Source: Epithemia pelagica (taxonomy: Eukaryota > Protista > Bacillariophyta). From it: DNA of 64,000 bases. The notes below the pieces were generated by a model. That model worked only from the letters and a program-made list of their open reading frames with translations, was not told where the DNA came from and made no database searches. Position 1 is the stretch's first letter. The number at the start of each line of letters is the position of its first letter. Below, piece after piece: positions 25,385-53,500 of this stretch. The stretch spans positions 248,001 through 312,000 of the forward strand of contig OX337228.1 of the NCBI GenBank assembly GCA_946965045.2, in the 5' to 3' direction. The position numbers and the translations under genes are program-made.

Positions 25385-25511
25385 ATGGCTGCTGACCTCA
25401 ATGCCTACCTACAAGACACCCTCTTGATCAAAGAACATGTGGTCAGGTCGGCGCTCAACTCACATGGCCTGGAGTCATTTGCTGACTTGGAAGCGATCTC
25501 AGAGAACGACA
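25385..25511 (+). pseudogene. Truncated gag fragment, copy 2
   Basis: Same 42-codon fragment and same breakpoint as 4693-4819. Confidence 0.75.
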
Positions 25512-25728
25512 GCGTTGTGCGTCTTCCCCTCAAAAAGGAATACTTGAGCCTCCTCAAGTTGATCCTATCGATATTACCAACTATTGTATATCCGTAATAA
25601 GACAAAGAGAATGCTCAGCTTTACTCTCCTTCGTACTCTAGTGTGTTCCAGCGCAACACAAGTGGTCTTCTCACGGGCCGAAACGAGACGTTGGTAAATG
25701 TTGTCCAATAATCGGAATCACACAGAAT

Positions 25729-27749: not shown

Positions 27750-28697
27750 AATGGTAGTTGTTCTTGTGCGAGTCGGATCGCAAGGCTCAACCTCCAACGT
27801 TTGCTGCTGCGGAGAAGAAGGTTGATGATGTGATAATTCTCTTCTGTACAAACACACGCACACACACACCACACACACATTTAGTGGGGTGGAGGCATCA
27901 GGCCAATGCTTACAAGCTGCCAATCCAATCTGGAGCGCCAATTGGCTAGAAAGGGGATGAGCTGCCGCGCCTACCCGCTAGCTAGGGTACGGTCGACCGA
28001 CTGCCCTGGCTCGGAATAGAAGTTACTCCGTATAACCTTACCAATCCAAAACAAGAACCCGCGCTGCCCCCCCCAAGACCCCCACCACTCCCCCCAAATG
28101 TACTTCGTACTAAATCTGTTTGAAAGAAAGACATGCCGTTTACTCTCATTAGAGTTAGGGGGACCGTTGTAGTCGAACGCCGGCCTGCCTAATTCGAAAC
28201 TCTACAGGCATATCTCTATTGTACACTTTTTTAGACGGATTGGGGACAGCCAATCCTGGATTGGCTGAATCCGGAAAGCCAAATACCCGGATGTGTGACG
28301 TAAAGATGACGTTCTATGATGACGCGTAACGCTCACGGATTGGATTGGCTACGTGTAAGCAATGGCCTCAGTCTCTCCGTATTGTGGATAGTATTGTAGT
28401 TTGTAGAGTGGTGAAGAAAAGAGGGGGAGGGCAGAGGTTTGGGGCAATTGGGGTGAAGAATCGATTTAGCAGCGAAACAGGCCGCCTTCCGTTTCGCGGC
28501 TCCAATGGCAACCATGCACCCGAAAGTCCTTTGCAGCGAACCAGTGAATGTGGAGCATTCTCCGGGTCCCCAAAAGCGCCAAAAGCGCCAGAAGCGTGGC
28601 TTACAATTGTCTTCCACAATGACGGGTGGGTCATCCAAGCAGCAGGACACCACCCACACAAGCCTACCGTTGATCACCGACCAAGACAGGAGTCGAA

Positions 28698-31353: not shown

Positions 31354-31706
31354 GTTAGCCAGAATGATACCTGGAGTTACAGTCACGAACGTGGAGGCTG
31401 GATCAGGATGGTCAATCCGAGAAACAAAAAGAACAAACCCAGCGAGACAGCAACTGCCAACAACCAAAGAAGACCCAAACAAACTCGAACTACACAAAGA
31501 AAGAGAGATGGTATTACCGGTAGCAGAACACCACAACGAGACTCTCTCTTCTTCTTCAATCTCTCATGGGGCAAATAAAAAAGGGGTTCTCTGCCGTGAT
31601 GGAACAGGAGCAAAGTTTTTGGGGGCCATTGTGTCTATTTCGGGGTAGGGTAACTTTCTGGTGTGACGTGTCTTCGATTGGACACTAGACTCACGACCTC
31701 TTCCGA

Positions 31707-31878
31707 AGAGGGATACAGAGGGGTATTACCCCCATTAAATGGGGGAGAGGAAACATGACCCTCCGTCGAGCCAGCCAATCGTCCGTGGGCGCGCACAACG
31801 GACCGTTTGCTGGTCTGTCCGTTCTTTTACATCCATCGAGAGCGTAGATGCAAAAGTTACTCCTAGGTGTATCCCTCT
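31707..31878. mobile_element. MITE-like element, copy 3
   Basis: Same 11-bp TIRs; identical by eye to 24971-25142. Confidence 0.65.
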
Positions 31879-32120
31879 AATTTATTCAGTTTCGCCGCGC
31901 CAATTGCAACCATGCCACCAAGTCCTTTGCAGCGAACGTGGAGCATCCTCCGGAAAACCCCAAGCTCCAGAAGCTAAGGTGGCTTACAATACTTGTCTTC
32001 CACTTGGACGGGTCGCGGGTCATCCAAGCAGGACATCACCAACACAAGCCAACCGACCGACCAGCAAGACAGATGCAGAATATTAGAGGTAGGACACAAA
32101 CAGAACAAAACAAAAGGAAA

Positions 32121-32247
32121 ATGGCTGCTGACCTCAATGCCTACCTACAAGACACCCTCTTGATCAAAGAACATGTGGTCAGGTCGGCGCTCAACTCACA
32201 TGGCCTGGAGTCATTTGCTGACTTGGAAGCGATCTCAGAGAACGACA
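32121..32247 (+). pseudogene. Truncated gag fragment, copy 3
   Basis: Same fragment and breakpoint as copies 1 and 2. Confidence 0.75.
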
Positions 32248-32464
32248 GCGTTGTGCGTCTTCCCCTCAAAAAGGAATACTTGAGCCTCCTCAAGTTGATC
32301 CTATCGATATTACCAACTATTGTATATCCGTAATAAGACAAAGAGAATGCTCAGCTTTACTCTCCTTCGTACTCTAGTGTGTTCCAGCGCAACACAAGTG
32401 GTCTTCTCACGGGCCGAAACGAGACGTTGGTAAATGTTGTCCAATAATCGGAATCACACAGAAT

Positions 32465-34486: not shown

Positions 34487-35422
34487 AATGGTAGTTGTTC
34501 TTGTGCGAGTCGGATCGCAAGGCTCAACCTCCAACGTTTGCTGCTGCGGAGAAGAAGGTTGATGATGTGATAATTCTCTTCTGTACAAACACACGCACAC
34601 ACACACCACACACACATTTAGTGGGGTGGAGGCATCAGGCCAATGCTTACAAGCTGCCAATCCAATCTGGAGCGCCAATTGGCTAGAAAGGGGATGAGCT
34701 GCCGCGCCTACCCGCTAGCTAGGGTACGGTCGACCGACTGCCCTGGCTCGGAATAGAAGTTACTCCGTATAACCTTACCAATCCAAAACAAGAACCCGCG
34801 CTGCCCCCCCCAAGACCCCCACCACTCCCCCCAAATGTACTTCGTACTAAATCTGTTTGAAAGAAAGACATGCCGTTTACTCTCATTAGAGTTAGGGGGA
34901 CCGTTGTAGTCGAACGCCGGCCTGCCTAATTCGAAACTCTACAGGCATATCTCTATTGTACACTTTTTTAGACGGATTGGGGACAGCCAATCCTGGATTG
35001 GCTGAATCCGGAAAGCCAAATACCCGGATGTGTGACGTAAAGATGACGTTCTATGATGACGCGTAACGCTCACGGATTGGAGTAAGCAATGGCCTCAGTC
35101 TCTCCGTATTGTGGATAGTATTGTAGTTTGTAGAGTGGTGAAGAAAAGGGGGAGGGCAGAAGTTTGGGGCAATTGGGGTGAAGAATCGATTTAGCAGCGA
35201 AACAGGCCGCCTTCCGTTTCGCGGCTCCAATGGCAACCATGCACCCGAAAGTCCTTTGCAGCGAACCAGTGAATGTGGAGCATTCTCCGGGTCCCCAAAA
35301 GCGCCAAAAGCGCCAGAAGCGTGGCTTACAATTGTCTTCCACAATGACGGGTGGGTCATCCAAGCAGCAGGACACCACCCACACAAGCCTACCGTTGATC
35401 ACCGACCAAGACAGGAGTCGAA

Positions 35423-37639
35423 ATGAGTCCCCAAAAGTACGAGAATAAAGACCAGATGGTTCTTGAATCTTTGAAGCAAAATCTTGAATATTTGAAGAAA
35501 AAAGGAATGCACAATGCTGTGGCCCAAGTCATGAATACTATAGCGGCGGAATCCAAAGAATCATCGCAGAAGGAAATAGATGAGAAGGAATCGCATAGTC
35601 CGGGCGAAACGAATGCCCGAGAGCGATTTCTCCAAGAGGATGACGACAAGGCTCGAGCTGAATGGGGTATACCGGATACGGAGAACCTGCAGCGACGGTT
35701 CCACTCGCTTCCACCACCTACGGAGCCGCAGCAATGGATTGGTCGATCTTCGGCCGAACGAGTCGTCAGTGAAGTTGTGTTGCAAAATTTCCATCAACGA
35801 TTATCGACGAATCATGCCGATTTCACATTCCTGGTCGCCTCGGGGCATGTCCGGAGTGGGAAGACTCGCACCGGAATGGAAACACCCCGAATCGTCCAGA
35901 ATTTTTGCGAGGCAGAGCTCACTCGCAAAAATGTAAACACTGCAAAGCCAGTCTACCTCCGAATTGATTTCCTCAATGGTGCTCGATTTAATAGGCAGTT
36001 TGACTCCCCTTCTCGGTCCATCAGCGAGGCACTCGGGGCTCGTCTCATTTCGGCCTTTTATGAAAAAATCGCGTTGCAGAACGGTGTGACTCACGATGTT
36101 GCGCTCCAGCACATTGTCACGCACATTAGAAATACTCACCCAGATCGTAATTTGATTGTCCCGATTGTGATCCACTTTGATGAGCATGGGGCTTTTATTG
36201 ACGACATGAACAAGGTTGTCTCGAATCGCGGTCAACCTGGAAAGGACTATTTTCTTGGTATGCTCCAGTTGATTGGATCTGCCGCAACAACAAATGAAGG
36301 ATATCTCTCTGCCTATCACAAAATGGGTGCCTATTTTCTTGTTCCGATTACGACAGGAACCTCTCATTCGGCTGCAAATTTTGATAGAGCGAGCCGCTAC
36401 AAGATTTGGCCAGTCCCCCTACCTGTATTGACATTTGACGAATCCCTGTTGTTGGCAGAATCTTGTTTGGAAGTGACGGGCCTGGAGCCTGACGAGATTT
36501 GTACCACGTTGAACGACGCCATGTTCCGAATCGCGTTGGGTGACACGGGTGGGCTTCCGGGCCTCGTTTTCTTCTTATCGACTAGGAAGCTACGAGACCT
36601 ATCATACGTGGAGCACCTACACAATCGAACCAAGTCTTACATTGCCGGAAATTGGAATCATCGGTGGGCAGCTATAACCTCAGTCTGCTTGGCACGACCG
36701 CGCGTGACAAATACAACGGTCCTCATGACAGAATACAAGCACCCAACTTTAGCAAGCGTCTTGTACGGCACGAGAGATGATTTTCTAAAAGTGCATCCAA
36801 GTTTAAATCCTGACATGGCTGCGATTGCCTACACTGTTCAAGACGCTTTGGATGGAGGGACAGTATTTTGGCAAGCGGATGGAGAAATCGGCCTAGCACC
36901 AGCTCTTCTTTCCAAATTCAATGGCGGAGAAGGAATGTTCAACCCAATCCTCACTCGACAAATATCGTCGTCACAAGAATGGACATGGCAATATTTTGAG
37001 TCGGCCCATTTGCTCTACCTTGCCGCGATCATGGCCGCTCTTGTCAAGGAAAGGAGACGTTTCAGCAACATTACGCTTGGAACGCTTCTTCGAAGTTCGA
37101 GTCCCCGTGAGTCCAGTATCCTCTCTGAAGCGTTGCAGCTACCAGCAAAATTTGATGGCGGAAAATTCACAAGGGACGCAACGCAATGCATCCCAAGAAT
37201 GAATGCAAAGAAAGGAAGCCAAATTAAGGTTTCTCTCGACGATTTCGAAACTGTACATCTGGCCATGGAAGGGACACCAATTGTCGACGGCTACCTTAAT
37301 TTACGTCTTGGGGCAGCGTCATCATCGGACATTGCCACCAAGACATTGTTTATTCAATACAAGCACAGCGGACTTGAGAGTCAATCATCCGCCGTACATA
37401 TTTCACATATGAATCACGAAGTCAACAAGCTGGCTGTCCGTCTGAATAAACATGGATGGCCGCAGGACCGAGGGTGGATCTTTCTGTGGGTCACAAACCG
37501 GGATGTTGTACAAGACTGTGTTCCAGATCAACGTCTTCTTTGGGTGGACAAGACCTCGCTCTCGAAACATGCCCCTTTGCTAGGAACTCGAGGCTTGGTG
37601 CCCTTGGAACAGCTACGGGAGGTGGATCACAAGGAATGA
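35423..37639 (+). CDS. P-loop NTPase + PD-(D/E)xK-like nuclease, copy 3 (738 aa, intact)
   Basis: Same motifs as 28698-30890, with a variant segment PAKFDGGKFTRDATQCIPRMN. Confidence 0.8.
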   Translation: MSPQKYENKDQMVLESLKQNLEYLKKKGMHNAVAQVMNTIAAESKESSQKEIDEKESHSPGETNARERFLQEDDDKARAEWGIPDTENLQRRFHSLPPPTEPQQWIGRSSAERVVSEVVLQNFHQRLSTNHADFTFLVASGHVRSGKTRTGMETPRIVQNFCEAELTRKNVNTAKPVYLRIDFLNGARFNRQFDSPSRSISEALGARLISAFYEKIALQNGVTHDVALQHIVTHIRNTHPDRNLIVPIVIHFDEHGAFIDDMNKVVSNRGQPGKDYFLGMLQLIGSAATTNEGYLSAYHKMGAYFLVPITTGTSHSAANFDRASRYKIWPVPLPVLTFDESLLLAESCLEVTGLEPDEICTTLNDAMFRIALGDTGGLPGLVFFLSTRKLRDLSYVEHLHNRTKSYIAGNWNHRWAAITSVCLARPRVTNTTVLMTEYKHPTLASVLYGTRDDFLKVHPSLNPDMAAIAYTVQDALDGGTVFWQADGEIGLAPALLSKFNGGEGMFNPILTRQISSSQEWTWQYFESAHLLYLAAIMAALVKERRRFSNITLGTLLRSSSPRESSILSEALQLPAKFDGGKFTRDATQCIPRMNAKKGSQIKVSLDDFETVHLAMEGTPIVDGYLNLRLGAASSSDIATKTLFIQYKHSGLESQSSAVHISHMNHEVNKLAVRLNKHGWPQDRGWIFLWVTNRDVVQDCVPDQRLLWVDKTSLSKHAPLLGTRGLVPLEQLREVDHKE

Positions 37640-37988
37640 AATCAATCGCTTGGAGATTAAATCTATCTGGTTTGGGTTTGTCCCGCAATGGAACCATTAT
37701 ATATACAATGGACATTGATAGCTTGAGCCAGGCGTTTGCGGATACTTGGAGCCGTGGAAAGTGGAACTATGGGAGAACGAGAGAGGCAAAGATTGGCAAG
37801 AGAGCACGGTGGCACTCGAAACGGTCTCGACGATAGATGCCAATGGAAAGGATCTTTATATAGAGTTCTATCCTATACTTCCAAGGACACAAGGAGGGAT
37901 GGACGACAGAGAGTGAGAAGGAATTGGGATTGTTCTAGTACCTGTTTTGGTTTTCTTGTGTTTGTTGCCTGGTGTGGTTTGTATTGTA

Positions 37989-38283
37989 TTAGGACGTGGC
38001 ACACGCACGACCACTAATACTCCCACTAATACTGGGACTGACTTGGCGAACCGAACATTGTCCCAACACGGGTGTCTGTGTCTGATGGTGATGATGATCA
38101 TGAGTGGTGGTTGTAGTCAAGGCGACGGTAGTTGTGGTCCTGGTCGTTGGTGTGGCACTCGCATCGTTGGGGGTGCTGTTGGTGGTTCCTCGTTCGCTTT
38201 CCGGTGGTGTGGTGGTGGCGGTGGAGGAGGAGGTACTCCTAGTATTAGTGCTAGGTGCATTGTCGGGACTCTTGTGGTGGGGG
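37989..38283 (-). pseudogene. Duplicated 3' end of the E2F/DEL gene
   Basis: 37640-38283 matches 50248-50888, including the E2F stop codon and C-terminal codons. It ends abruptly at the MITE terminus. Confidence 0.9.
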
Positions 38284-38284
38284 A

Positions 38285-38456
38285 AGAGGGATACAGAGGG
38301 GTATTACCCCCATTAAATGGGGGAGAGGAAACATGACCGTCCATCGAGCCAGCCAATCGTCCGTGGGCGCGCACAACGGACCGTTTGCTGGTCTGTCCGC
38401 TCTTTTACATCCATCGAGAGCGTAGATGCAAAAGTTACTCCTAAGTGTATCCCTCT
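38285..38456. mobile_element. MITE-like element, copy 4
   Basis: Same 11-bp TIRs. Confidence 0.65.
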
Positions 38457-39431
38457 AATTTATTCAGTTTCGCCGCGCCTATTGCAACCATGCCACCAAG
38501 AAGGGCGTAGGAGAGGTCAGAGAAAAAGGGGTAGGAAGAAAAGATTCCAGGGAAGGCGAAAGCAGAAAGCCGTTGGTAGTAGAGCGGCGAAGAACAGGGG
38601 GAGGGAGGAAACTTTCGGGGCAGTGGGTGAAAAAGAAAGAGATCGATAGAGAAGATCAAAGCTGTACTCCTACTGGGTAGGAGTAGAAAGTAGGAAGGCA
38701 TTCGTAAGGTTAGTATATGTAGTGTGCATGATGAAGGAAACACTACGTAAATTGTACAGCTACCTACTCCAAATTACTCCTAGGAGTACCTTGTAGAGTT
38801 GCTCATTTTTTCTGTCTAAGCTATCATTAATAAAGTCCACATAGGCAGCACTTCGTATCCCAAGTCGCACGCATGCACCACTTTCATGCCGTCGCGACCA
38901 TCTCAGAAACCCAAAAACTCACTATAAGCCAAACAGTGGAAAGAGTTTTTGGTTAAATAACAGGGTCGTTTGGCATCAAATTTCACTCTTGAGCATCTCT
39001 TCTCCATTGGAAGCCCAAAACGGAGTCCATATCATGTATGTAACTCTGATGTAAGTATGCAAAAACTTTCTTCTATGTATCCAAATTGGATCCCCGACCT
39101 TGCATCAGAGTTACAATATTGTTTTTCATGCCCGTAAGTCCAACTGAAACTGCCTCCAAATTATGAGGAAAAAACCCATGTCACGCTCGGCTTCCGTCCG
39201 AGATGGCATACTCACAATATTAATATTTCTACGTCTACGAATGTAGTATTACACAGTAGTTGCATGTTAATCGACAATTCCAAACTCTCCCTTCGACTCA
39301 ATGAGATTGGGCCTCTCTCATCTTTTACAAGACGTCTCTTTATTTTGTAATGACCCGATTGACACATCCATCCAATCAATCGTCCCACTTTATCATAACG
39401 AGCCTCACGGTTTGATTGTGTCGACAGAGCC

Positions 39432-42400
39432 ATGAGAACTCGATCTCAAGCCACGACGAAACTAGGGGAAGAACCAGCAGCCACTCCAACAGAACCTGAG
39501 ACCCCTCCACCTCCTCTTCGCCGCTCCTCCCGAATTGCTAAAGACCCTCCACCTCCCAAGGAACCTCCAGTCCCTTGCAAGGAACCTCCAACCCCTTCCG
39601 AAGATCCTCCAGCACCTCCCAAAGAGCGTCCTGTCCCTCCCAAGGACCTCCCGCCCCTTCACACCCTCTTTGCCGATCGTCCCGAATTGCTGAAGACTTA
39701 CCACCATCTCCCAATCTTCAAACTCGAGCCACGCGCCTGAACAAAGGCACGACGGTATCCAATAGTTATGTCGAAAGGGAAAGGATTGCCAAGATTCGTA
39801 AGCAATTCAAACACCACTACAAGAAGCCGTGCTCCGTTTTTGGTCTCGAAAGAGAGGCCCGTTATCGCGGTGGTTTTTTTTTTCTGTCTAAATTGCGAAT
39901 ATGCGGATAACAAGGAGCGTGCCCAACCACAACTCAAGGTCAATAGGTTCTCTGGTCTTTTTGGATGTGTTGCCGAGCACAAGAATGACATTTATCCAAC
40001 CGACCGAATGGTGGATTAGAAAAAAAAGGAGACTCAAGAAACTTGCAGAACAACAGCGACAGAAAAAAGCCAAAGCCGACAAGGAAGCGCAACAAGAGAT
40101 TTGTTCTCTTCCAAATTCGGATTCCTTGGAACCAGAATCCAAGGAATCAACACATGATCTCTCCACCGAACCTTCTCACTCCAATGAAGCACCACCATGT
40201 AACCCACTTCAAGACATCAAACCTGACGAATCCAGCAAACCCCCTTCACAAAAGTCCATTACGATGACAGTTCATACCAATGAACCAAATCTCACATGGA
40301 CTCAACCTGAAGTAGCGAATTTCCCCTCTCAGTCCACGAAGCATCCTCCCAATCCTCATGAAGACCAGGAATTTGCCAGTAGCCCGAAGAAACCCCCTCC
40401 TGTCCCAACCACCGATGCTCCATCCACCCAGACACTCATTCCACCCCCGGACGACGACGGCGAAGAGTCTGACCGTATACCTGAAGACGACGGCTTCGAA
40501 GACACAATAGATAAGTCTATAACCCCCCGTAGTAGAAACCACCCTTCTGTGGATCTCAATCGCGGACTGACGATTCCGGAGATCCTTGATCGCTCTGACG
40601 CAACTTCTGAAGCGGCCACAACATCAAGGGAAGAAACAGAAGAAGAGAAGAAACAGTACACTGTTTCGTTGGTTAATGGACTATTGATGCAAGTCGAGTC
40701 GCTTAAAAAGAAGCTTTCGAAAGAAGGACAAAAAAACGCAACTCTCAAGCGTCGTCTTTCGGAGCAGCGGGCAAAAAACAAGTCGAGACTGGATCGTATC
40801 TACTATCTCCAGAAAAAGATAGAAAAATCTGGTCCAGAGGGGATGGCTTCGCTTCCTTTGACTTGTTCCAAAGAAGAAAATGCCGAGATGATTGTCCGAC
40901 ACATCAAGGAAGTCATTCAATCTTCCGTGAAGAATCATCAAGTTGGTAGCCAACGGTCCCATAAGTTTTTTCGAATGCTAACCAATATGCTCATGAGCGA
41001 CAACTTACATGGAACGCAAGTGCGTGACATCATTGTTAAGGCAGTTTCAAACTACCTTTGTCAAACTTGTTTCTCACCATTCCGTTTTCTTCGCGAAATG
41101 GATACAACCGGTGGCGTTCTGAGTCTGTCGGGTCTGGAAATTTTGCGGAAGTGTGAGTCCGATGGGAGGAAGGGAGCCCATACAATGATCCCCAGTTCGG
41201 CTGCCATGAAAAAAGCCCAACAAGAAATAGAACGGTTTGCCGACACAATAGTTCCCTTCCATACCATTCGCAATACGAAAGACGGGTCGGAAGGTTTCAT
41301 CTTTCGTGGGGCAGATAGTATGAAAGGTGTTCTGAGATCCAATAACGCATTGGAGGGCGAAGCGAAAGAAAGAGAACATACAGTCGCTTCTACTATGGAT
41401 GGTGCCAGTCTTACAAAGTCATTGGACCATACACTGGGTGGATTCAAGTACAATGACATCTCCAATCCACTTCAACGGTCCCAGGCCGCTTGTGTCCCAA
41501 CCTGTTGTGTAATTGGTCGGAAAAAGAAAAAACACTGTACGCGATTATTCTCTAGAATGTTGAAAGAGAATAAGGAAGCCGCCGAGACAGTACTCCCGAA
41601 AGCTTTCGGAATAAAAAAAGTGTACAATCCCCTCAAAGCCGACATGTCGTGTGATTTCAAAGTTTCAGACAAGGGAGGTGCGGTCAAGGTTGCGAAATTT
41701 CCATGTGCTAAGTGTCACATTTCAAGCGACAACTTAACAAAGGGCCTAGAATCGCCGGACGAATGCAAATGGTGTGATCACTGGGACTATACATCCACTG
41801 AAGATGGGTGGATGTGTCGCCACTTTCCTATTTGCACGGATGACTGCGTGCAAGTCCGTCAAGAAGAAATGAAAAAATTCGAGAAGGACATGCCCCAGAT
41901 CAAGGACAAGATTAAAGAGATATGGGGCCAGTCGAAGATTGCAATGAACAAGACAATGGACCCGAGAATGCCAGTGGACGAGATTCAGCTGACCACCGTA
42001 ACTTCAATTCACTTCGATGTTACGAAAGCATCAGCAACTCTACAAAAGAGGTATTCTTCTTGGCTCAACAAGGATTTGGGTTTACGGAATCTGTCACTAG
42101 ACGGCAATGTGTTGGAGTGGCAGGATCGTTTACGACGCCAACTTATTTCGGAGTGGCAGTATGTTGATTGCACGGATTGTATCCGATTGTTCGGAGAAGG
42201 GAAGGTCAGCACGGCACTGGTTATGGTGATGGATTCTATTCCGTGCATTCTCCACATGGATATGCGAATGGGACAGAAGATTTTGACCATGTGCTTCCGC
42301 ACTGGGCTTATGAATGCCAAAAACAATCTACTTCCTTGGATCACTCGGTCCAACCGTTCGTCTGTCGAAAAAAATGCAAGTCCTTCCTTCGAGGAATCGA

Positions 42401-43268
42401 GCAATGTATCAATTCTGAGATACTTGGAACTGGAAATCTCGCGTTCCAATTCCAGATTCCGTTTGAAGATACAACAAAGACCATCGGTGTGGTTCAGATG
42501 AGCAATGTCCAGATACGTCGTATGATTGCCGACATCGAGAAACTTGTGGACAAGTGCATTGTCGATGAGGATGACGTATTCTTATGGAAGAGGGCCATGC
42601 AACACTACTCAGCCTCGTTCCAACTGCTGAGAATCAGGGAACCAATGACGAACAACCAAATATTTGAGTACCAAAAACATGCGGATCTGTTCTATCGTGA
42701 TTGGATTGAGTTATATGGGGACGATGGAATTACAAATTACGCACACTACATTGGTAGTGGGCATATCGGGGAATATCTCTTACACTGGCGCAACCTCACG
42801 AACCATTCCCAGCAAGGCTGGGAAGCGTTCAACTCCGCGTTTAAGAGCTTCTATTTCAATAGAACCCAAGGCGGAGGAGCAGTGAACAGAGGGCAAGGGG
42901 CTCGATCAAGGTTACGTCCCATGGTGCGATGGATCCAACGCCACATGGTTTTCATGCTGGGCTATGACCTGGAAACCATGCGAGCTGAAATGGATGCCAG
43001 GACGCCAGAGGAGGAAGAAAAGTTCAAAACTTGGGTGAGAGACAACGGTGGAACGATCGAATTTGGGCAGCTAGTTCGACACAACAAGACAGCCAATGAC
43101 AAATCCAAGGATGAAGAAGATGAAGATGAGGATGGGGTAAAGGAATATGAGTTCGACTGGGATGTGGGAGTGGAGATTCTCTATGATCCTCGCTTGGATG
43201 ATTCAAATGATCTCGATGCAGACTCAGAAGACTCGACAACTACTGAGGAAGAGTACGAATCAGAGTAG
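39432..43268 (+). pseudogene. RAG1/Transib-like (CCHH-type) DDE transposase, disrupted
   Basis: STMDG (41398), KADMS (41641), CAKC (41704-41715), PCILHMD (42253), GITNYAH..GH (42729-42764), SQQGWEAFN (E at 42822). Inferred lesions: TGA at 39738, ACCG duplication at 39999-40006, A7 run at 42368-42374. Confidence 0.7.
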
Positions 43269-43707
43269 ATAAGAAAGATACTAGTCAATATATAATGAGA
43301 TTTGCTTCAGAGATTGCACTACTTGTCTGCTTGAACGAGACTGTTTGCTTCCACGAGACTTGCAATGAAAGGAATGTCCATATGGAAATCCATTTCCTGA
43401 ATTCCGTCCTGTATGTCCGGCTTGAATCGATCACCACCAACAACAACACAGCCGATGGACCAAGATTTTGAGGGAAGTAGTGTCCCTACCTATTCTATAC
43501 CCTCGATTCCTCCGACTTGGTCATATCTCTCAGGATCATTCTAGTGAAAATTGATTCGTCGTGTTTGTCACGAAGAACATATTGTTTCTTGTCGGACGGT
43601 GGGAAATAGACAGAGACTTGGAAAGTGGACCCTTCGTGCTCATATTGGTCACCAAGAGATACCAAACAATCTGGGGGAGCCTAAGACCGAGGTGAAGCAT
43701 CTCTGTA

Positions 43708-44964
43708 TCAAATCTCGGGGGTAGGAGAGCTATCTGGTGTCGAAAGATCAGTGGACGAGTCAGGTGACGTGACTTTTGGAGAAACGAGTGCCTCAGATGA
43801 AACAGGAAAGGGACGGAATTTCTTGTCATCCAATGGGAATGGCTTGGCAAGTAGAACACTTTCTAGATGGTCCGTTGGAGGATCGACCTTGAATTTACCC
43901 CCTCGACTCTTGTCATAACGGTACCGCTCAAAGTTTACTGAAACCTTGTCTTGAAAAGGCGAGAAAACTATGTCGATGCGTTGGCCAAGGCATCGGCATT
44001 TAAACTCCGGCTTTTCTGTCGGGCCTCGGATCACTGTCAGAAAATGGCCTCGCTTGAGGGTCACACCAGCAGCACCATCTTTTAAAGTTGGTCGAACTTC
44101 GCTCGAACCGTACACTGCTGCAAAACCAAGGAAATTTCGGACAATGTCCAACTCTTCTTGTGTTTCAAAGCGTAGGATGCCATTCTGACAGCTCATCCGA
44201 ATTTTACGGCGCGTGAGTTTGGCATCTAAGTCTTGATAGGTCTCAGAACCGTCGATATAATGACAGAAGACACATTTCAGGTGAGAATTGAGAAGGACAT
44301 GCAAGTAATTAAATGTTTTGGAGGGGATGTTACCGATGGTGACTGTCTGGAAGTCACGTTTCTCTGCATGCCCGCCTCGTTTGTTAAGAATCTTGATTAG
44401 AGCCTGGCGTAGTAGGAACAGGCCGTGCCAAGTGTTTTTGTGGAAACAGCGTGGAGGAGCAATCAGTTGTTCGTTTGGTTTCACTTGATCCATGGGGAAG
44501 CAGGTAAATTTCGACTCGTCTATTGGCACTAACTTGTTCTCCCGTACTTGCTTGAACCGTACTACGTAAACGTTTTTGATACCTTCCGCCCATCTGTTCA
44601 ACGGAGATTTCAGTTGCTTCTGTGTGAAACAAAATGCAGGATATCTGATGCAAATATCTTGTGCTTGAGCTTCGTACTGGTGAATCGAATCCCAGGATTC
44701 GTAGAGTTCGATTTGACGAGAGCCAGTTTCTTCTTCGAGGGGATCGAAATCACACTTCAGAATGGAGGGATGGCATTTTAGATTCTTTGGGGGGAATAAC
44801 GGGTAGAACAATTTCAACATGACATTGCCATCAGTATGTTTGTTCAGCTGGCATATGGTGGTTGAGTGTTGATCTTGATCACTCAATTTGACATGCACAA
44901 AAGTTCCCACCTGAAAGACATCATTGAATAGCGGAACATAAACCGGCCCTTCGTTTTCATACAT
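43708..44964 (-). CDS. Hypothetical protein (418 aa), convergent with the transposase; N-terminus possibly BAH-like
   Basis: Intact ATG-to-stop ORF of normal composition. VGTFVHV..ICQL..LFYP..ELYES..VYVVRF loosely follows BAH spacing. Confidence 0.6.
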   Translation of the reverse strand: MYENEGPVYVPLFNDVFQVGTFVHVKLSDQDQHSTTICQLNKHTDGNVMLKLFYPLFPPKNLKCHPSILKCDFDPLEEETGSRQIELYESWDSIHQYEAQAQDICIRYPAFCFTQKQLKSPLNRWAEGIKNVYVVRFKQVRENKLVPIDESKFTCFPMDQVKPNEQLIAPPRCFHKNTWHGLFLLRQALIKILNKRGGHAEKRDFQTVTIGNIPSKTFNYLHVLLNSHLKCVFCHYIDGSETYQDLDAKLTRRKIRMSCQNGILRFETQEELDIVRNFLGFAAVYGSSEVRPTLKDGAAGVTLKRGHFLTVIRGPTEKPEFKCRCLGQRIDIVFSPFQDKVSVNFERYRYDKSRGGKFKVDPPTDHLESVLLAKPFPLDDKKFRPFPVSSEALVSPKVTSPDSSTDLSTPDSSPTPEI

Positions 44965-45255
44965 GATGCCTTGTTTCTATGGTCAATCAATGGGAGACAA
45001 AGCAGTCGTTTGGGTATGTGGACAAAGGGAAATGAAGTATCAAGAATCATCCTTCACCATTGGCATGGTATCGTCCAAGCAACGGATGATTGCTTCCGAG
45101 TGAGCAGTGCCGTATAAGAATTCGGTACTAATGTGTGACATTCTCTGAGGAAAGGAATTAATTAGAAAATTTAAAGTGGTCATGAAGTTTTGTCGCAAAA
45201 ATGGGGGTATTTATTGTCGCCGGCAGGTCGTGTGTGTGCAAGTGTGTGGCGGGCG

Positions 45256-45777
45256 GGCTCGAAAAGCATGTTTTGTGGGAATGGATGGGATCCAAAGTGC
45301 TCCTTACGAGCCAGTCAATCGACTCATCCGTGTGCCATTAGGGAAATTTGGAATTAAGAAAGGCAATTCAAGCCCAAATTTGATGGTTGATTTCAGTAGG
45401 ACCTCAAACGCCTGTCATGAATGCCATGCGCATGAGGTCGAAGTTGTCGGCAAGGATCAAGGATGTGATTCATTGCTCTCATCATTCGAAAATGTTGGCC
45501 TGGATTGTAATGAACTGGCTCGAAAAGCATGTTTTGTGGGAATGGATGGGATCCAAAGTGCTCCTTACAAGCCAGTCAATCGACTCATCCGTGTGCCATT
45601 AGGGAAATTTGGAATTAAGAAAGGCAATTCAAGCCCAAATTTGATGGTTGATTTCAGTAGGACCTCAAACGCCTGTCATGAATGCAATGCGCATGAGGTC
45701 GAAGTTGTCGGCAAGGATCAAGGATGTGATTCATTGCTCTCATCATTCGAAAATGTTGGCCTGGATTGTAATGAACT
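45256..45777. repeat. 261-bp tandem duplication (2 copies)
   Basis: GGCTCGAAAAGCATG...AATGAACT at 45256-45516 and 45517-45777; two mismatches seen. Confidence 0.95.
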
Positions 45778-47502
45778 ACACCTAACTCTTTGCCCCGATA
45801 ACAGGATAACAAGACTTGTTTTCTATGTGCAGTCCATTGGGTGACCCAGCACCCAGCCCTTAATTAGAATGGCAATTGCATTATAGTCATCTGATGATAG
45901 CACTCATAGGTTTGTCCACCAGCGCAGTAGTCAAAATAAAGGTAGGAAGTGTCAGTCTCTTTCTTTTGTTTGTTTGCTGTTCCTGTTATCCTGCTTGCTA
46001 CTTGCAACAATTGGTCCTCATCATCGCATACTGCACATCTGAGGAGGTACAATGGGGTCTGGTGCATTAAAAAGGCCAACATAACAGGCTCTTCTTAGCC
46101 GACTTCTTAGCTGTTTTCCGTAGAGAGTCCTCGTACTCCCAGCTATTTTCTGCTTACTCCTTATTCCTGTCTCTAGCTAGCCATATTTTTTCTTGCTTCT
46201 TTTCTTATCGCATCTTACTCGTAGTAGCTCAGTTCTCTACTCTCTACCCATGCCTCTCCTCTAGCTCTTTCATGCCTGTTTTCTACGCGCCTAGCTCTGT
46301 TTTTGCGCCCCCTCTTTTTTAGGTTCAACGTACCCCATTTGTTGAGTTTTAATCGCCCCCATCCCTGATATAATACAAGTCACACAAATTTTGCGCGTCT
46401 GTGAGTCTGTCTTTCACCCTGTCACACATGCTCCTCTCACAAGTCACAAGCCAGTCTTGTTTTGTCGCCTGCATGAAATCCAACCGACGTACTCCCTATC
46501 TCTCTCATAATACACTTTCCTTTTTAATCTTGCCGCAGCCCCAGCAAAATTTCCGTTTTGTTCTTTATCAGACTGATTCTTCTATGGCCTGAACTCGAAG
46601 TAATCGTGGGTATGCAAGTTTTTGATAAGAGTACAAGACAAGTTTGTTGATCGAAGTACACTCTATCGGGATATCTCTTGCACCCTTCCAATTCCAACAG
46701 CGACCAACAATTGAAAAACTGAGACTGGGGTAACGTTCTCGAACCACCATGGCACGCCGGCAATAAATTCAAAGTGGCAGTTCGATAACTATATCAATCT
46801 ACCCACATTGTCCTCTTGAGATCATCCATATTCGTAGCTGCCTTTTTGACTAACATGTCTCTACCCATTTGTTACCATCGTCTATTACAACGTTCTTTCC
46901 TGCTAAAGTTTTGGTAGTCTGCTCGCTTTCTTCCTTCGATTTTTTTCACCACATACAACAGTCAAGAGTCGTCTTCTCCTCCAACCCCGTATGCTCACAC
47001 TAACAACCACTTTTCTCCTCCTGCTTCCAACTTTTCCATACGTAGCCTTCTTCTAACCAACATTCTTTTCATCCGATCCTACTAGACGCCATAAAAGCAA
47101 TACCTAAATCATGTTCGTCCGATGCTGTTGATCATCGTAAAAGTTGCCTATGTAATCACAAAATTAGAAGCGACGTTTTTCCCGTAAGAAGATTTCAGAT
47201 AGAAAATTTTTGATTTTTGAAGTCGCTGATAGGGCCCCTACCCCAAGACGCTCCGACATTGCGGGGCGATCCACGCGGTCGCACCCCGTATACCAAGTAG
47301 TTTGCAGCGAACGTGGAGCATCCTCCGGAAAACCCCAAGCGCCAGAAGCTTGCTAAGGTGGCTTACAATACTTGTCTTCCACTTGGACGGGTCGTGGGTC
47401 ATCCAAGCAGGACATCACCAACACAAGCCAACCGACCACCGACCAGCAAGACAGATGCAAAATATTAGAGGTAGGACAAAAACAGAACAAAACAAAAGGA
47501 AA

Positions 47503-50247
47503 ATGGCTGCTGACTTTAATGCCTACCTACAAGACACCCTCTTGATCAAAGAACATGTGGTCAGGTTGGCGCTTAACTCACAGGGCCTGGAGTCATTTGC
47601 TGACTTGGAAGCGATCTCAGAGAAAGACATCGAGCAGATCGCCACGGACATCCGCAGGCCTACTGGAACAATGCCAAACCCTGATCATGATCAAGATGCA
47701 CCGGTTGCCGGAGTCCCCGAGACCATTCCCAATCCAGGGGTTTCCTTCGGCCGCATCTACGAGAAACGCTTAAAGATGTTGAGGTACTTCATCCTTCACC
47801 TCAAGAAGATTCAACGTACCTTCAACGCGGCTACTGCCACTCTAGATCGCTTGAGCGATATGTACGAAGAAGAAGAAGAGTACGACAACGACGTGACTGT
47901 CCCCGAGAAGCTCACCAGCGTAGAATCCCTGCGGTCCACCCTTGAGGCCCTCGATTACTACTTGGAACGCAAGCGCGGTGTTACAGGAATTCCCCTTGCC
48001 GCATACACACGTGAGGATGTTGAGTTGCCAGCGGCTGCTGACGACGAGGGTATTGGGCAGCCATCCATCTTAGAAGAGTTAATCCGACGCGCCCCCCATA
48101 CCGGTAGCACCTACCGCCAGGACAATGCACTTGTTTGGATTGCGATCCGCCAGATCACCCACGAAGGGCCATGCTGGGGTTGGGTACAAGAGTACTCACA
48201 CAACATGAACGGTCGGGGCGCCTATCTTTCTCTCAAAAGCCACTCTCATGGAACTGTATTCCAAGAAAGCCTACGTGTACCGGATACTGAGAACCTGCAG
48301 CGACGTTTCCACTCGCTTCCACCACCTACGGAACCGCAGCAATGGATTGGTCGATCTTCGGCCGAACGAGTCGTCAGTGAAGTTGTGTTGCAAAATTTCC
48401 ATCAACGATTATCGACGAATCATGCCGATTTCACATTCCTGGTCGCCTCGGGGCATGTCCGGAGTGGGAAGACTCGCACCGGAATGGAAACACCCCGAAT
48501 CGTCCAGAATTTTTGCGAGGCAGAGCTCACTCGCAAAAATGTAAACACTGCAAAGCCAGTCTACCTCCGAATTGATTTCCTCAATGGTGCTCGATTTAAC
48601 AGGCAGTTTGACTCCCCTTCTCGGTCCATCAGCGAGGCACTCGGGGCTCGTCTCATTTCGGCCTTTTATGAAAAAATCGCGTTGCAGAACGGTGTGACTC
48701 ACGATGTTGCGCTCCAGCACATTGTCACGCACATTAGAAATACTCACCCAGATCGTAATTTGATTGTCCCGATTGTGATCCACTTTGATGAGCATGGGGC
48801 TTTTATTGACGACATGAACAAGGTTGTCTCGAATCGCGGTCAACCTGGAAAGGACTATTTTCTTGGTATGCTCCAGTTGATTGGATCTGCCGCAACAACA
48901 AATGAAGGATATCTCTCTGCCTATCACAAAATGGGTGCCTATTTTCTTGTTCCGATTACGACAGGAACCTCTCATTCGGCTGCAAATTTTGATAGAGCGA
49001 GCCGCTACAAGATTTGGCCAGTCCCCCTACCTGTATTGACATTTGACGAATCCCTGTTGTTGGCAGAATCTTGTTTGGAAGTGACGGGCCTGGAGCCTGA
49101 CGAGATTTGTACCACGTTGAACGACGCCATGTTCCGAATCGCGTTGGGTGACACGGGTGGGCTTCCGGGCCTCGTTTTCTTCTTATCGACTAGGAAGCTA
49201 CGAGACCTATCATACGTGGAGCACCTACACAATCGAACCAAGTCTTACATTGCCGGAAATTGGAATCATCGGTGGGCACCTATAACCTCAGTCTGCTTGG
49301 CACGACCGCGCGTGACAAATACAACGGTCCTCATGACAGAATACAAGCACCCAACTTTAGCAAGCGTCTTGTACGGCACGAGAGATGATTTTTTAAAAGT
49401 GCATCCAAGTTTAAATCCTGACATGGCTGCGATTGCCTACACTGTTCAAGACGCTTTGGATGGAGGGACAGTATTTTGGCAAGCGGATGGAGAAATCGGC
49501 CTAGCACCAGCTCTTCTTTCCAAATTCAATGGCGGAGAAGGAATGTTCAACCCAATCCTCACTCGACAAATATCGTCGTCACAAGAATGGACATGGCAAT
49601 ATTTTGAGTCGGCCCATTTGCTCTACCTTGCCGCGATCATGGCCGCTCTTGTCAAGGAAAGGAGACGTTTCAGCAACATTACGCTTGGAACGCTTCTTCG
49701 AAGTTCGAGTCCCCGTGAGTCCAGTATCCTCTCTGAAGCGTTGCAGCTACCAGCAAAATTTGATGGCGGAAAATTCACAAGGGACGCAACGCAATGCATC
49801 CCAAGAATGAATGCAAAGAAAGGAAGCCAAATTAAGGTTTCTCTCGACGATTTCGAAACTGTACATCTGGCCATGGAAGGGACACCAATTGTCGACGGCT
49901 ACCTTAATTTACGTCTTGGGGCAGCGTTATCATCGGACATTGCCACCAAGACATTGTTTATTCAATACAAGCACAGCGGACTTGAGAGTCAATCATCCGC
50001 CGTACATATTTCACATATGAATCACGAAGTCAACAAGCTGGCTGTCCGTCTGAATAAACATGGATGGCCGCAGGACCGAGGGTGGATCTTTCTGTGGGTC
50101 ACAAACCGGGATGTTGTACAAGACTGTGTTCCAGATCAACGTCTTCTTTGGGTGGACAAGACCTCGCTCTCGAAACATGCCCCTTTGCTAGGAACTCGAG
50201 GCTTGGTGCCCTTGGAACAGCTACGGGAGGTGGATCACAAGGAATGA
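47503..50247 (+). CDS. Chimeric ORF: copia Gag N-terminal ~258 aa fused in frame to NTPase-nuclease (914 aa)
   Basis: Gag-like motifs DIRRPTG, RLKMLRYF, GIPLAAY, RAPHTG..YRQDN..VW, W.W....NGRGAYLSLKSH. The junction at ~48278 (TACCGGATAC) leads into PDTENLQRRF and the rest of the paralogs' sequence. Confidence 0.85.
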   Translation: MAADFNAYLQDTLLIKEHVVRLALNSQGLESFADLEAISEKDIEQIATDIRRPTGTMPNPDHDQDAPVAGVPETIPNPGVSFGRIYEKRLKMLRYFILHLKKIQRTFNAATATLDRLSDMYEEEEEYDNDVTVPEKLTSVESLRSTLEALDYYLERKRGVTGIPLAAYTREDVELPAAADDEGIGQPSILEELIRRAPHTGSTYRQDNALVWIAIRQITHEGPCWGWVQEYSHNMNGRGAYLSLKSHSHGTVFQESLRVPDTENLQRRFHSLPPPTEPQQWIGRSSAERVVSEVVLQNFHQRLSTNHADFTFLVASGHVRSGKTRTGMETPRIVQNFCEAELTRKNVNTAKPVYLRIDFLNGARFNRQFDSPSRSISEALGARLISAFYEKIALQNGVTHDVALQHIVTHIRNTHPDRNLIVPIVIHFDEHGAFIDDMNKVVSNRGQPGKDYFLGMLQLIGSAATTNEGYLSAYHKMGAYFLVPITTGTSHSAANFDRASRYKIWPVPLPVLTFDESLLLAESCLEVTGLEPDEICTTLNDAMFRIALGDTGGLPGLVFFLSTRKLRDLSYVEHLHNRTKSYIAGNWNHRWAPITSVCLARPRVTNTTVLMTEYKHPTLASVLYGTRDDFLKVHPSLNPDMAAIAYTVQDALDGGTVFWQADGEIGLAPALLSKFNGGEGMFNPILTRQISSSQEWTWQYFESAHLLYLAAIMAALVKERRRFSNITLGTLLRSSSPRESSILSEALQLPAKFDGGKFTRDATQCIPRMNAKKGSQIKVSLDDFETVHLAMEGTPIVDGYLNLRLGAALSSDIATKTLFIQYKHSGLESQSSAVHISHMNHEVNKLAVRLNKHGWPQDRGWIFLWVTNRDVVQDCVPDQRLLWVDKTSLSKHAPLLGTRGLVPLEQLREVDHKE

Positions 50248-50594
50248 AATCAATCGCTTGGAGATTAAATCTATCTGGTTTGGGTTTGTCCCGCAATGGA
50301 ACCATTATATGTACAATGGACATTGATAGCTTGAGCCAGGCGTTTGCGGATGCTTGGAGCCGTGGAAAGTGGAACTATGGGAGAAAGAGAGAGGCAAAGA
50401 GTGGCAAGAGAGCACGGTGGCACTCGAAACGGTCTCGACGAGAGATCCCAATGGAAAGGATCTTTATATAGTTCTATCCTAAACTTCAAAGGACACAAGG
50501 AGGGATGGACGACAGAGAGTGAGAAGGAATTGGGATTGTTCTAGTACCTGTTTTGGTTTTCTTGTGTTTGTAGCCTGGTGTGGTTTGTATTGTA

Positions 50595-53500
50595 TTAGGA
50601 CGTGGCACACGCACGACCACTAATACTCCCACTAATACTGGGACTGACTTGGCGAACCGAACGTTGTCCCAACACGGGTGTCTGTGTCTGATGGTGATGA
50701 TGATCATGAGTGGTGGTTGTGGTCAAGGCGACGGTTGTTGTGGTCCTGGTCGTTGGTGTGGCACTCGCATCGTTGGGGGTGCTGTTGGTGGTTCCTCGTT
50801 CGCTTTCCGGTGGTGTGGTGGTGGCGGTGGAGGAGGAGGTACTCCTAGTATTAGTGCTAGGTGCATTGTCGGGACTCTTGTGGTGGGGCAATAAGGGTGA
50901 GACATGATGGGACTGGGGCAGTACTACAGGGGGTGAGCATGATGATGAGGATGATACTGTGTGCGTTGCTTGTTGCGGTGGCTGGCATCCTCCAATGACA
51001 CTGGGTGGATAGATCGAACCACGAGGTGTTTCGGTCACCAACGGGGACACGGAAGAAGAAGCAGAAGTGTCCCCGGACGGCTGTGAACGGGGAATCATGG
51101 ACAAGAGAGACGGTCCAGTAGTAGGAGCCGAAGGATAAAACGTAGTGACCTGGGGTGGGTAGAGCTGACACACCATGGGCGTCGTTGTCGTGGTCGTGGT
51201 CACTGTGGTGGGGGCATCCGGTTCTTCATGTCGTTGTCGTTGTTCGTGTCGTGCTGGAAGGAGAGTTTGGATGGAGGGTACGGATGCGGTCAAAGAGACA
51301 GTAAAGGGACAGGTCTGATGCAAGGGCAATCGTTGACCAATTTGTCGAATTTGGTGAAAGTCCAGTTGATACACCCACTTGTAGTAGGGCCGTCGATGAT
51401 GGTATCCAAACATGGCATCCGTACTGGTTGCAGTGCCACCATCTTCCATGGGGCAAGCCGCGGAATCCACCTCTTTTTCCACCGACAATGCCGACAAACT
51501 ATTCGTAGTACAGGGTCGTGCCGGTGGATCATCCACCTTGGTCAAATATCCCGTCGCCGTCAAGACATTGGCAATGTCGTAGAGTCGTCGAATTTTGGTC
51601 TTGAGACCACGAGCGGCCAGCCGATGCAACAGTTCCGGATCCTTGGGAAGCGTACAAGGACCGTCCGGGGACTGCTTGTGATTGTTGTGGTTGTTGTTGT
51701 TGTGGGGGTCGCTACTACTACTCATTCCTCGGGCACCCAAGGTGGCCAATTCCGTCACGGACGTGACCGTCCCATGAATTTTATCCGATGCATCGGCCAA
51801 GGAGACAATGGGATTGCCGGCCAAAAAGACTTGAAGAAATTGCTGCGACAATCGACTCAGCGATTTGGCTTGACGTTCGGTGGTCGTATTATTGCTGTTA
51901 CCGTCACTGCGGCGTTTCGAGTTGGGACTCTCTCCTTCTCTGTGACCGCCTTGGTCGCCAGTCCCATTGGTTGCTGCGGCGGATGCATCATTTTCCTTTT
52001 CGTCGTTGTCGTCGTCTTGGGGTTCCCCCACAATCAATCCCGCCGCTTGAGCATCGTCTGGATACTCGTGACAGGCTTGTCGTTGCAAAATGGCAAAGTA
52101 GGTGGGCAAATGATGGGTGCCCATCCAATGATAGGTATTCTTGCCCTTTTTGACCACGAGTTTGACCGCTTCCAAAATATTCACGACATCGTAGATGCGC
52201 CGACGTTCCACACCCAATTCGTGCGCCAACACATCAATCACGGCCAGCGTTCCGGGGGGCGAATGCCGGTGTTTGGCCAAAAAGGTTTCGGCCAAGACAC
52301 CCAAGGACTTTTTCTTGCGACTGTACTGTGCTTCACACGACGACGTAATAGTAGTACTAGTGGAAGTTTCCAGTGGTGGTACAGGAGTGGTTCCTATGCC
52401 GTGACTCATGGTCCGGGAGATGGATTGTGTACTCGGAGTGGATGTTGTCATTGTGGATGTTGTTGTCGTGGGCGTTTGCGAAACGGCGGGAGGAACAGGG
52501 ACCAATGGCTTGTGAGGATGGGCCATGGGCGTTTGTAGTGTGGTGGGCTGGGGACGAACCGGGGGTTGTTGTTCTTGTCGTTGTTGTTGTGGCGGATTTG
52601 GGACCGTCCCACCAGCCACAGCAGTCGTCGTTGTCGCTGTCGCCTGTGGTGGTTGGGGAGGACCGGTCGTCGTCGTCGTGTGAACCGGCCCTATTGTAGG
52701 ACCCGTAGCACAGCCAGAGGCATTTGGACGATTCTTGGTCCAGCTGCCGTGGATGGTATTCGTTGCCTGTTGAGGAGGGGATGGTGTCGCAGTACTATTA
52801 TTCGGAGACGGTTGCTATATATATATAGAGAGAGAGAGAGACAACCAGAGACCGACCGGGAACATCACAAAACACACAAAGGAAAACAACACAAATGAGA
52901 GAATCCACAGACAAACAAACAAACAAACAAACACACGACCAAAGGCAGTCGTTGCCGTAAGAAATCGTACCGACTGTTCTTGCGACAATGTGTGCCGAAT
53001 GATGGGTGCTTGCGGGGGTGGTGGCACGGATTGGGACTGTGCGGGTGCCGGTTGGGCGCCTCCGTTCACCACCAAGGGTGTGGGTGGTACTCCAGCCTTG
53101 TGGTTGTTGTTGTTGTTGTTGTTGGTAGGTGGAGAGGGGGTGGTAATGGTTGGTGTGGGACGGAATCGTGTGCCGCCGGATGCCTGGTGATGAGAATGAG
53201 AATGAGGATAGTAATACGGATGGTGGTGATGATGGTGATAATGAGGAGGAATCGAATGGTAGAAAGGATACACGGTCCGGGAAGGAGGAGGAGCCGTGCC
53301 CCACCAGCGAATGGGCGTTGTTGTGGTTGTGGTTGTGGTTGTTTTGGTAGTGGATGTGGGACCATTCGTGGCCGTGTGAGAATGAGGGTGAGCCGGATGG
53401 GGGACTGTCTGTGGTTGTGGATGATGGTGTGGTTGAACCCGTGGATGCGCAACTGATGAGTGTGGTGGTTGGGACTGCTTTTGTGGTTGTTGTGGTGGTG

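Follow-up and report, generated by a model that had tools for sequence, protein, structure and literature searches.

The 64,000-nucleotide stretch of Epithemia pelagica DNA analysed here (GenBank assembly GCA_946965045.2, contig OX337228.1, positions 248,001 to 312,000; hereafter the window, with positions counted from its first letter) contains long intron-free open reading frames (ORFs), an E2F/DP gene and copia elements, and its proteins have their relatives in diatoms (a Bacillariaceae metagenome-assembled genome and Cylindrotheca closterium). Window positions 4614–37674 hold a tandem array of ~6.7-kb units (starts at 4614, 24276 and 31012), each of which is a divergent pair of a minus-strand gene of 737 amino acids (aa) and a plus-strand NTPase gene of 730–738 aa. 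Downstream of this array lies the subject of this study, an ORF at 47503–50247 (+) in which the first 60% of a copia-type Gag runs in frame into the body of one of these NTPase genes.

The fusion reading frame and its junction

No stop codon interrupts the 914 codons between the ATG at 47503 and the terminal stop codon, and the open in-frame fusion reported by a first-pass annotation was thus confirmed, with its junction present on two contigs. An in-frame upstream ATG at 47455 adds 16 codons and gives the 930-aa product recorded by the source gene caller; the mechanically delimited ORF begins at a TTG at 47302. Exact look-up of the 914-aa version returned no record, and the recorded 930-aa form was found via its protein cluster. 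The fusion gene and its flanks are composed of the following parts:

47292–47502 (+): 5′ module, here called U, with the in-frame ATG at 47455; upstream of the Gag start and recognized by homology to copies in the units
47503–48276 (+): putative Gag-derived codons 1–258 (N-terminal domain and cut first capsid lobe), based on ORF1 homology and the P0027 model described below
48274–48277 (+): junction between Gag-derived and NTPase-derived DNA, from an alignment of three paralogues; the same in a second locus (L006) on contig ctg1332l
48277–50247 (+): codons 259–914 and stop, a predicted STAND/AAA+-like NTPase core with a PD-(D/E)xK-like motif region, from paralogue identity and Foldseek
50248–50891 (unstranded): 3′ flank, here called Y, duplicated along with the NTPase body and 2.0% diverged from 37640–38285

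A tblastn comparison of the fusion product with the window split it cleanly, residues 259–914, 1–42 and 43–258 each behaving differently. Residues 259–914 matched 35669–37636 (99.5%), 28920–30887 (96.8%) and a broken copy at 15903–17935, and at the DNA level 48275–50891 corresponds to 35667–38285 at 99.1% identity. Residues 1–42 matched three short places in the window, where the 5′ region and the first 43 Gag codons recur (25181–25514, 31917–32250 and 4628–4822); the 341 bp at 47292–47632 match the first two of these at 94% identity counting gaps. For residues 43–258, tblastn found no other match anywhere in the window.

The Gag piece replaces the first 82 codons of the NTPase paralogue, in agreement with the earlier estimate that ~258 Gag codons had displaced an N-terminus of ~77–85 aa. 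At the junction (48274–48277), likeness to the three aligned paralogues starts at GT(G/A)TACCGGATAC. The first-pass annotation had put the join at a short tract shared by both parents. The location stands, but the sharing is conjectural, as the parent Gag copies in the window end at codon 43; TACCGGATAC is the first stretch of NTPase-derived sequence, and demonstrable microhomology at the junction amounts to at most 2–3 bases.

The 90% cluster of P0008, the closest intact paralogue, contains two 930-aa members, P0181 and P0185, and all cluster members come from one ENA assembly. P0181 (788-kb contig) and P0185 (930-kb contig ctg1332l) are identical at 921 of 930 residues and have the same junction. 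Synteny with the window extends along the second locus (L006, L007), which shares the upstream 8.8 kb, the E2F neighbour and the spacing to the intact paralogue, while carrying one unit where the window has three. It also carries a hemizygous 6.9-kb copia-type element with long terminal repeats (LTRs) at L006:2893–9771, whose 153-bp LTRs are 100% identical and whose empty site is window 47229–47232, ~270 bp before the Gag ATG. Overlapping match coordinates at this element imply a target duplication of 4–5 bp. The insertion could alter expression of the fusion allele beside it. It was rejected as the parent of the Gag piece, its Gag being only 34% identical to that of the fusion.

The two contigs are taken here to be haplotypes; the shared junction would be explained equally well by segmental duplication on a large scale and of very recent date. 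Because a second, syntenic contig with 10 nucleotide differences shows the same junction, the fusion is a real chimeric gene in the genome, not an assembly chimera, and it predates the haplotype split. Tandem units and several LTR elements make the region rich in repeats, and on that ground one might suspect an assembly artefact or a template-switch chimera retro-captured inside a retroelement. This explanation is largely refuted and we consider it very improbable: the junction is found in two syntenic contigs, between which there are point changes and a 6.9-kb insertion, and no LTR, Pol or poly-A is associated with the fusion. Moreover, 644 bp of 3′ flank, with the tail of the convergent E2F gene, belong to the duplicated block, and this block is collinear with the genomic unit; both observations point to an event at the DNA level.

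Kinship and predicted structure of the two halves

In word searches, codons 1–258 were 44–56% identical to their relatives, and 49–56% identical to ORF1 proteins of LTR elements with an RVT_2 Pol. At five loci (L001–L005) the ORF1 relative lies directly upstream of a Pol. The Pol of L003–L005 matches Pfam RVT_2, with the reverse transcriptase in the C-terminal half (RVT_2 at residues 811–986 of 1319 in L003), and BLASTP shows the incomplete Pol ORFs of L001 and L002 to be its homologues; ORF1 likewise precedes an RVT_2 Pol in the L006 element, giving six LTR elements in all (L001–L006). L003–L005, on three contigs of assembly ENA ERZ21939226, which apparently includes the window as well, have LTR pairs of 112–114 bp that are 99–100% identical and ~6.15–6.19 kb apart. 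The LTR scan took in L003–L006 (pairs of 112–153 bp, 99–100% identity) and left out L001 and L002, which are short contigs. The ORF1 family is very large, with 5921 representatives at E ≤ 1e-3 in an exhaustive profile search and a typical length of 450–520 aa, and at least eight other lineages of it are present in the same assembly. A close parent of the fusion's Gag piece was found neither by this profile search nor by word searches over proteins of 142–1600 aa, the best match being 56% identical.

Profile libraries were uninformative for this part. No Pfam family matches the Gag piece at E values up to 10, no Pfam Gag profile (Retrotran_gag, UBN2, TYA and similar) matches any of 83 ORF1-family members, and neither half of the fusion matches anything in PADLOC or NCBIfam. 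A sequence-profile search of the PDB with the Gag family gave nothing useful. The window's own two copia elements were tried as the source of the Gag piece and rejected for lack of sequence kinship, since hhalign found nothing between the piece and their Gag regions. Upstream of the fusion, comparison with the full elements L003–L005 revealed no alignable LTR or primer-binding site, and no 3′ LTR remnant was found after the truncated Gag starts in the units. As a side observation, P0007 (188 aa, from a 346-kb ENA contig) has ~60 Gag-family residues, 66% identical to fusion residues 147–202, followed by a Pol piece, and looks from its sequence like an internally deleted element.

For a structural view of the Gag family we used its member P0027, modelled by AlphaFold2 with 83 sequences (predicted local distance difference test, pLDDT, 86.6). 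Foldseek against the PDB matched the model to the Drosophila Copia capsid (8vvw; prob 0.97, TMt 0.49) and to the Ty1 capsid C-terminal domain (CA-CTD; 7nlh and 9rxx; prob 0.98–0.99, TMt ~0.7), with Drt2 (9rxy) also a high-probability match, while the E values of these capsid matches were weak (0.01–1.3). Of the nine best matches in BFVD, all except the one at rank 8 were lentiviral or endogenous-retrovirus Gag and caulimovirid coat proteins. Gene order and predicted fold thus support the view that the N-terminal part is the Gag of a family of copia-type (RVT_2) LTR elements. The label of copia-like Gag given in the first-pass annotation is accordingly upheld by the position before an RVT_2 Pol and by the fold, though not by any Pfam Gag profile; that annotation had named a failure to match Gag profiles as evidence against itself, and such a failure is what Pfam returned, but we consider it outweighed because synteny and structure both point to Gag.

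The P0027 model has a two-lobed, all-helical capsid fold, of which the fusion retains the first lobe only, and that in cut form. Fusion codons 1–258 map to P0027 residues 1–288, so that the last Gag-derived residue falls inside the helix at 281–297. Kept are the ordered N-terminal domain (helices to ~199 of P0027), four first-lobe helices (219–279) and half of the fifth; lost are the second lobe (helices 309–387) and a disordered basic tail with a terminal helix. The match to the Copia capsid spans ~220 columns and the matches to Ty1 CA-CTD ~95–100 columns of a 90-residue target, from which we infer that the second lobe is the CA-CTD. Thirty of 36 strongly conserved Gag-family positions are retained in the fusion; G54T, Y248S and L249H deviate at highly conserved ones.

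These losses bear on two functions proposed in the first-pass annotation. Packaging or multimerization of a nuclease in retroelement-like particles is unlikely on the model, because the second lobe (the presumed CA-CTD) and the basic tail that self-assembly would call for are gone. As for an anti-retrotransposon decoy, a mechanism of the CTD type is excluded by the modelled absence of the CA-CTD, while a binding role of the N-terminal domain and first lobe would still be compatible with what is kept.

The C-terminal part belongs to an NTPase family that was found in diatom data only, with lengths of 570–816 aa, and Gag occurs in no member besides the fusion. The N-termini of the family are variable and non-Gag, and its conserved core begins with a Trp that lies two residues ahead of the junction and that the fusion lacks. 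Homologues with this Trp and with non-Gag N-termini led us to reject the idea that the fusion is ancestral to the family. The Walker A (G-x4-GKT) and Walker B (h4-D-E-H-G) columns are invariant in 15 sequences including the fusion. In the model of P0008 (pLDDT 75), N-terminal residues 44–84 score below 50, which places the break at the end of a flexible region and leaves the NTPase core complete; what the fusion lost is a disordered or coiled N-terminal arm.

Foldseek with the P0008 model returned 97 PDB matches at E ≤ 1e-3, headed by archaeal ORC2/Cdc6, Apaf-1, CED-4, the plant NLRs NRC2/3/4, Avs3 and archaeal ATPases. On this predicted fold, the NTPase part is STAND/AAA+-like, with its whole conserved core retained in the fusion. 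No Pfam (NB-ARC and NACHT included), NCBIfam or PADLOC entry matches the NTPase, no repeat-type sensor domain was found, and a PDB profile search with the family gave spurious armadillo matches only. In a nuclease-like region, one strand begins with an invariant Asp (P0008 D622) and the next one ends in Q-Y-K; this D...QxK motif sits in an alpha-beta-beta-beta-alpha-beta context, with Gln in place of the acidic residue in most members and a Lys that is not invariant, and neither a profile in Pfam, PADLOC or NCBIfam nor a fold match from the P0008 model points to a PD-(D/E)xK nuclease there. Of the earlier label, an NTPase-nuclease, the first word is backed by a STAND-like fold, and the second, still putative, by this motif only.

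Separately, the NTPases of units 2 and 3 differ by eight amino acids clustered in 19 codons (30377–30431 versus 37126–37180). In fusion numbering this patch covers codons 751–769, just before the nuclease-like region, and it could reflect conversion from another paralogue or a fast-evolving surface.

Duplication, gene conversion and selection

The fusion copy is collinear with an intact unit on both sides: a 218-bp piece, U, the Gag start, the NTPase from codon 83, and Y. The features outside the fusion on which this comparison draws are:

35423–37639 (+): closest intact paralogue, the unit 3 NTPase gene (738 aa, P0008), putative partner in duplication and gene conversion
31917–32250 (+): truncated U and first 43 Gag codons of unit 3, arranged and oriented with respect to the NTPase gene as they are in the fusion
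25181–25514: the unit 2 equivalent of truncated U and Gag
4628–4822: the unit 1 equivalent, partly deleted
38283–38500 (+): 218-bp spacer piece at the start of the second tandem copy, equivalent to 31705–31922 (97.7% identical)
38501–47282 (unstranded): 8.8-kb segment between the 218-bp piece and U, with ACCAAG on both flanks, present in both haplotypes

Divergence between the two copies is even across the neutral parts (218-bp piece, U and Y) and much lower in the NTPase body:

218-bp piece: 2.3%
U (non-coding): 3.0%
first 43 Gag codons: 5.4%
NTPase coding: 0.41%
Y: 2.0%

The NTPase coding sequences of the fusion and its paralogue differ at eight positions, four of them within the first 60 bp after the junction. 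Over the remainder of the NTPase body, synonymous divergence falls far below that of the flanks. Selection on the protein cannot account for this, and we infer from the pattern that gene conversion of ~1.9 kb homogenized the NTPase body. The E2F/DP ORF (50595–52619, −) is complete beside the fusion only and overlaps Y with its 3′ end; the copy of Y that follows unit 3 holds its last ~97 codons (37990–38285), which mark the end of the duplicated block. Because the complete ORF stands only beside the fusion, the join of Y to the 218-bp piece at 38285 looks like the novel junction of a tandem duplication.

From these data we propose the following as the simplest history. A segment comprising the 218-bp piece, U, a Gag ORF, the NTPase and Y would have been duplicated in tandem beside the E2F gene. 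A deletion or illegitimate join would then have linked Gag codon 258 to NTPase codon 83 in the downstream copy, in frame by chance, and in the upstream copy the Gag ORF would have been cut from codon 44. Afterwards, gene conversion from the intact paralogue would have homogenized most of the NTPase body.

The module U is ~97% identical at aligned bases, with three indels, to 31917–32120 and to the unit 2 counterpart, and 75–80% identical to the stretch immediately before the NTPase ATGs (35212–35394, 28487–28669 and 8417–8585). It is absent from the 5′ untranslated regions of other Gag-family elements (L003–L005). We note as an observation in its own right that a related 5′ module of ~190 bp is thus common to the unrelated Gag and NTPase ORFs (47292–47502 and 31885–32055 on the Gag side).

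The two alleles differ at 10 positions in 2790 bp, nine of them nonsynonymous and one synonymous, distributed as 2 and 0 in the Gag part and 7 and 1 in the NTPase part. Neutrality predicts ~77% nonsynonymous changes, and at a ratio of nonsynonymous to synonymous rates (dN/dS) of 0.2, nine or more out of ten would have a probability of ~0.002 (binomial estimate from site counts). No constraint was detectable between the two alleles; the first-pass annotation had put forward dN/dS of the Gag part as a check. Nor was an orthologous fusion found: in the collections searched, whose coverage of close relatives is uncertain, no protein of 503–1600 aa covers both parts except the two alleles, and the related carriers of the junction that the earlier annotation had thought to look for were not found in them.

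Taken together, the data are best fitted by the third possibility raised in the first-pass annotation, a neutral recent recombinant. We think it probable that the fusion is a young chimera formed at the DNA level, most likely without a selected function yet, whose NTPase half has been kept intact by conversion. If expressed from the retained U, it would act as an NTPase paralogue with a foreign N-terminal domain and would form no particles. Several points weigh against this account. The nearest Gag among proteins of 142–1600 aa is only 56% identical although many lineages of the family are present in the assembly, and since none exceeds that identity, the Gag piece is not a fresh copy of an active element. 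The longer ancestor that a history of two deletions calls for was not observed, and the Gag piece might instead have been imported from elsewhere. All 774 bp of the piece are open in both alleles, which under neutrality has a chance of ~0.1–0.2 (a rough estimate from indel and substitution rates in the flanks); this is suggestive of constraint without being significant. Finally, the fixed differences between fusion and paralogue are mostly synonymous, as purifying selection would have it if conversion is not the cause.

Part of this evidence would suit a functional, newly domesticated chimera, in which the Gag N-terminus serves as a sensor or decoy that binds the Gag of a matching copia lineage through contacts of its N-terminal domain and first lobe, and binding either recruits or activates the STAND NTPase and its nuclease-like domain or poisons capsid assembly. 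The STAND fold is common to NLRs and Avs3 and the full conserved core is retained; the N-terminal module is the exchangeable one in STAND-type proteins, and N-termini vary in this family. The ORF is intact on both haplotypes, the native U, related to the paralogues' upstream region, has been retained, and no intact copy of the parental Gag lineage survives in the assembly. Gag-derived restriction factors are, furthermore, an established kind of gene (Drt2, PMC10951436). We nevertheless hold domestication to be rather unlikely, given that the presumed CA-CTD, counterpart of the domain that mediates restriction by Ty1 p22 and Drt2, is missing, that the first lobe is cut in its last helix and substitutions occur at conserved Gag positions, and that allelic differences run at nine nonsynonymous to one synonymous with no orthologue of this architecture found. 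More speculative still, and in our judgement a long shot, is a scenario in which an NLR-like STAND NTPase with a nuclease-like domain took up the Gag N-terminal domain and first lobe as bait. It would sense Gag of that lineage during assembly, turn on its NTPase and nuclease, and so work as a Gag-guided restriction factor of a new architecture, with the missing parental lineage as the footprint of its action.

A final alternative differs from the neutral chimera that we favour solely in predicting decay: the fusion may be an expressed NTPase paralogue, neutral in function or mildly deleterious, that is becoming a pseudogene and is kept open mainly by conversion from its neighbour. The 0.2% diverged tract is flanked on both sides by sequence diverged by 2–6%, the drop in synonymous divergence within it is beyond what selection on the protein alone can explain, and the allelic differences of the NTPase part (7 nonsynonymous, 1 synonymous) agree with such a fate. 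The Gag part, however, is open without any conversion donor, and with its large overlap with the favoured account we regard this one as unlikely in its own right.

Elsewhere in the locus, unit copy number is polymorphic (three in the window haplotype, one in the other), and unit 1 is interrupted by two copia elements:

8885–15908: copia element 1, with 170-bp LTRs differing at one base
18068–24278: copia element 2, with 279-bp LTRs 100% identical and a single 1710-aa Gag-Pol ORF

The 737-aa protein encoded in each unit has a Cas4-like match just below the Pfam cut-off and a DUF5898 domain. In that of unit 1 only (5037–7250, −), residues 85–146 gave a weak Pfam hit to the Arc C-lobe, at E 0.008 and short of the cut-off, which lies in a coiled-coil region and is probably spurious. 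The 8.8-kb segment at 38501–47282 breaks the contiguity of the 218-bp piece and U seen in the units; its ORFs of 866, 366 and 418 aa have no family match, it includes a perfect two-copy tandem repeat of 261 bp (45256–45777), and no terminal repeats were found for it.

Comparison with known systems

Host genes derived from retroelement Gag are known mainly in animals and yeast, where the whole capsid or its C-terminal domain is kept. Arc, PEG10 and Fv1 exemplify Gag-derived coding sequence in host genes, with a complete two-lobed capsid and purifying selection. The fusion resembles them in that Gag-derived coding sequence is retained in a host gene, but it has a truncated first lobe, no orthologue in the collections searched and a 9:1 ratio of nonsynonymous to synonymous allelic differences; neither a complete capsid domain nor the CA-CTD, as found in domesticated Gag genes, is retained.

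A second comparison is with Drt2 and Ty1 p22/p18, restriction factors that derive from the Gag of yeast Ty1-family elements and consist of the capsid C-terminal domain (PMC10951436). As with Drt2 and p22, a piece of Gag ORF from the Ty1/copia superfamily stands detached from Pol as an open frame in a host genome, and as with Drt2, structural variants and retroelement insertions are concentrated in the region. Unlike these factors, the fusion has lost what appears to be the C-terminal lobe and is joined to an unrelated enzyme, and a restriction activity of it is hypothetical. Like the Ty1/copia elements of diatoms (CoDi-like; PMC2806351), the parent family has short LTRs (112–153 bp), a separate ORF1 of ~450–520 aa and an RVT_2 Pol, and it is abundant in the same assembly; the fusion, by contrast, holds ORF1 codons 1–258 only and neither an LTR nor a Pol.

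Fusion of the N-terminal portion of a Gag with a STAND-type NTPase would constitute a new architecture. Should the chimera prove neutral, the locus still traces its birth stepwise, from tandem duplication through an apparent illegitimate in-frame join to gene conversion that would have kept one half intact, and its two haplotypes offer a natural comparison. If functional, the fusion would link capsid-derived restriction factors with NLR-like receptors bearing integrated domains, in diatoms; to our knowledge, neither has been described in this group. With plant NLRs carrying integrated domains and with bacterial Avs proteins it shares a STAND-like core (fold matches to NRC2/3/4, ZAR1-type resistosomes, Apaf-1, CED-4 and Avs3) and the combination, in one chain, of a foreign domain from a genetic parasite's structural protein with a nuclease-like domain. 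It differs from both in lacking a repeat sensor and any Pfam match to NB-ARC or NACHT, in carrying its nuclease-like part at the C-terminus, and in the very recent date of the integration.

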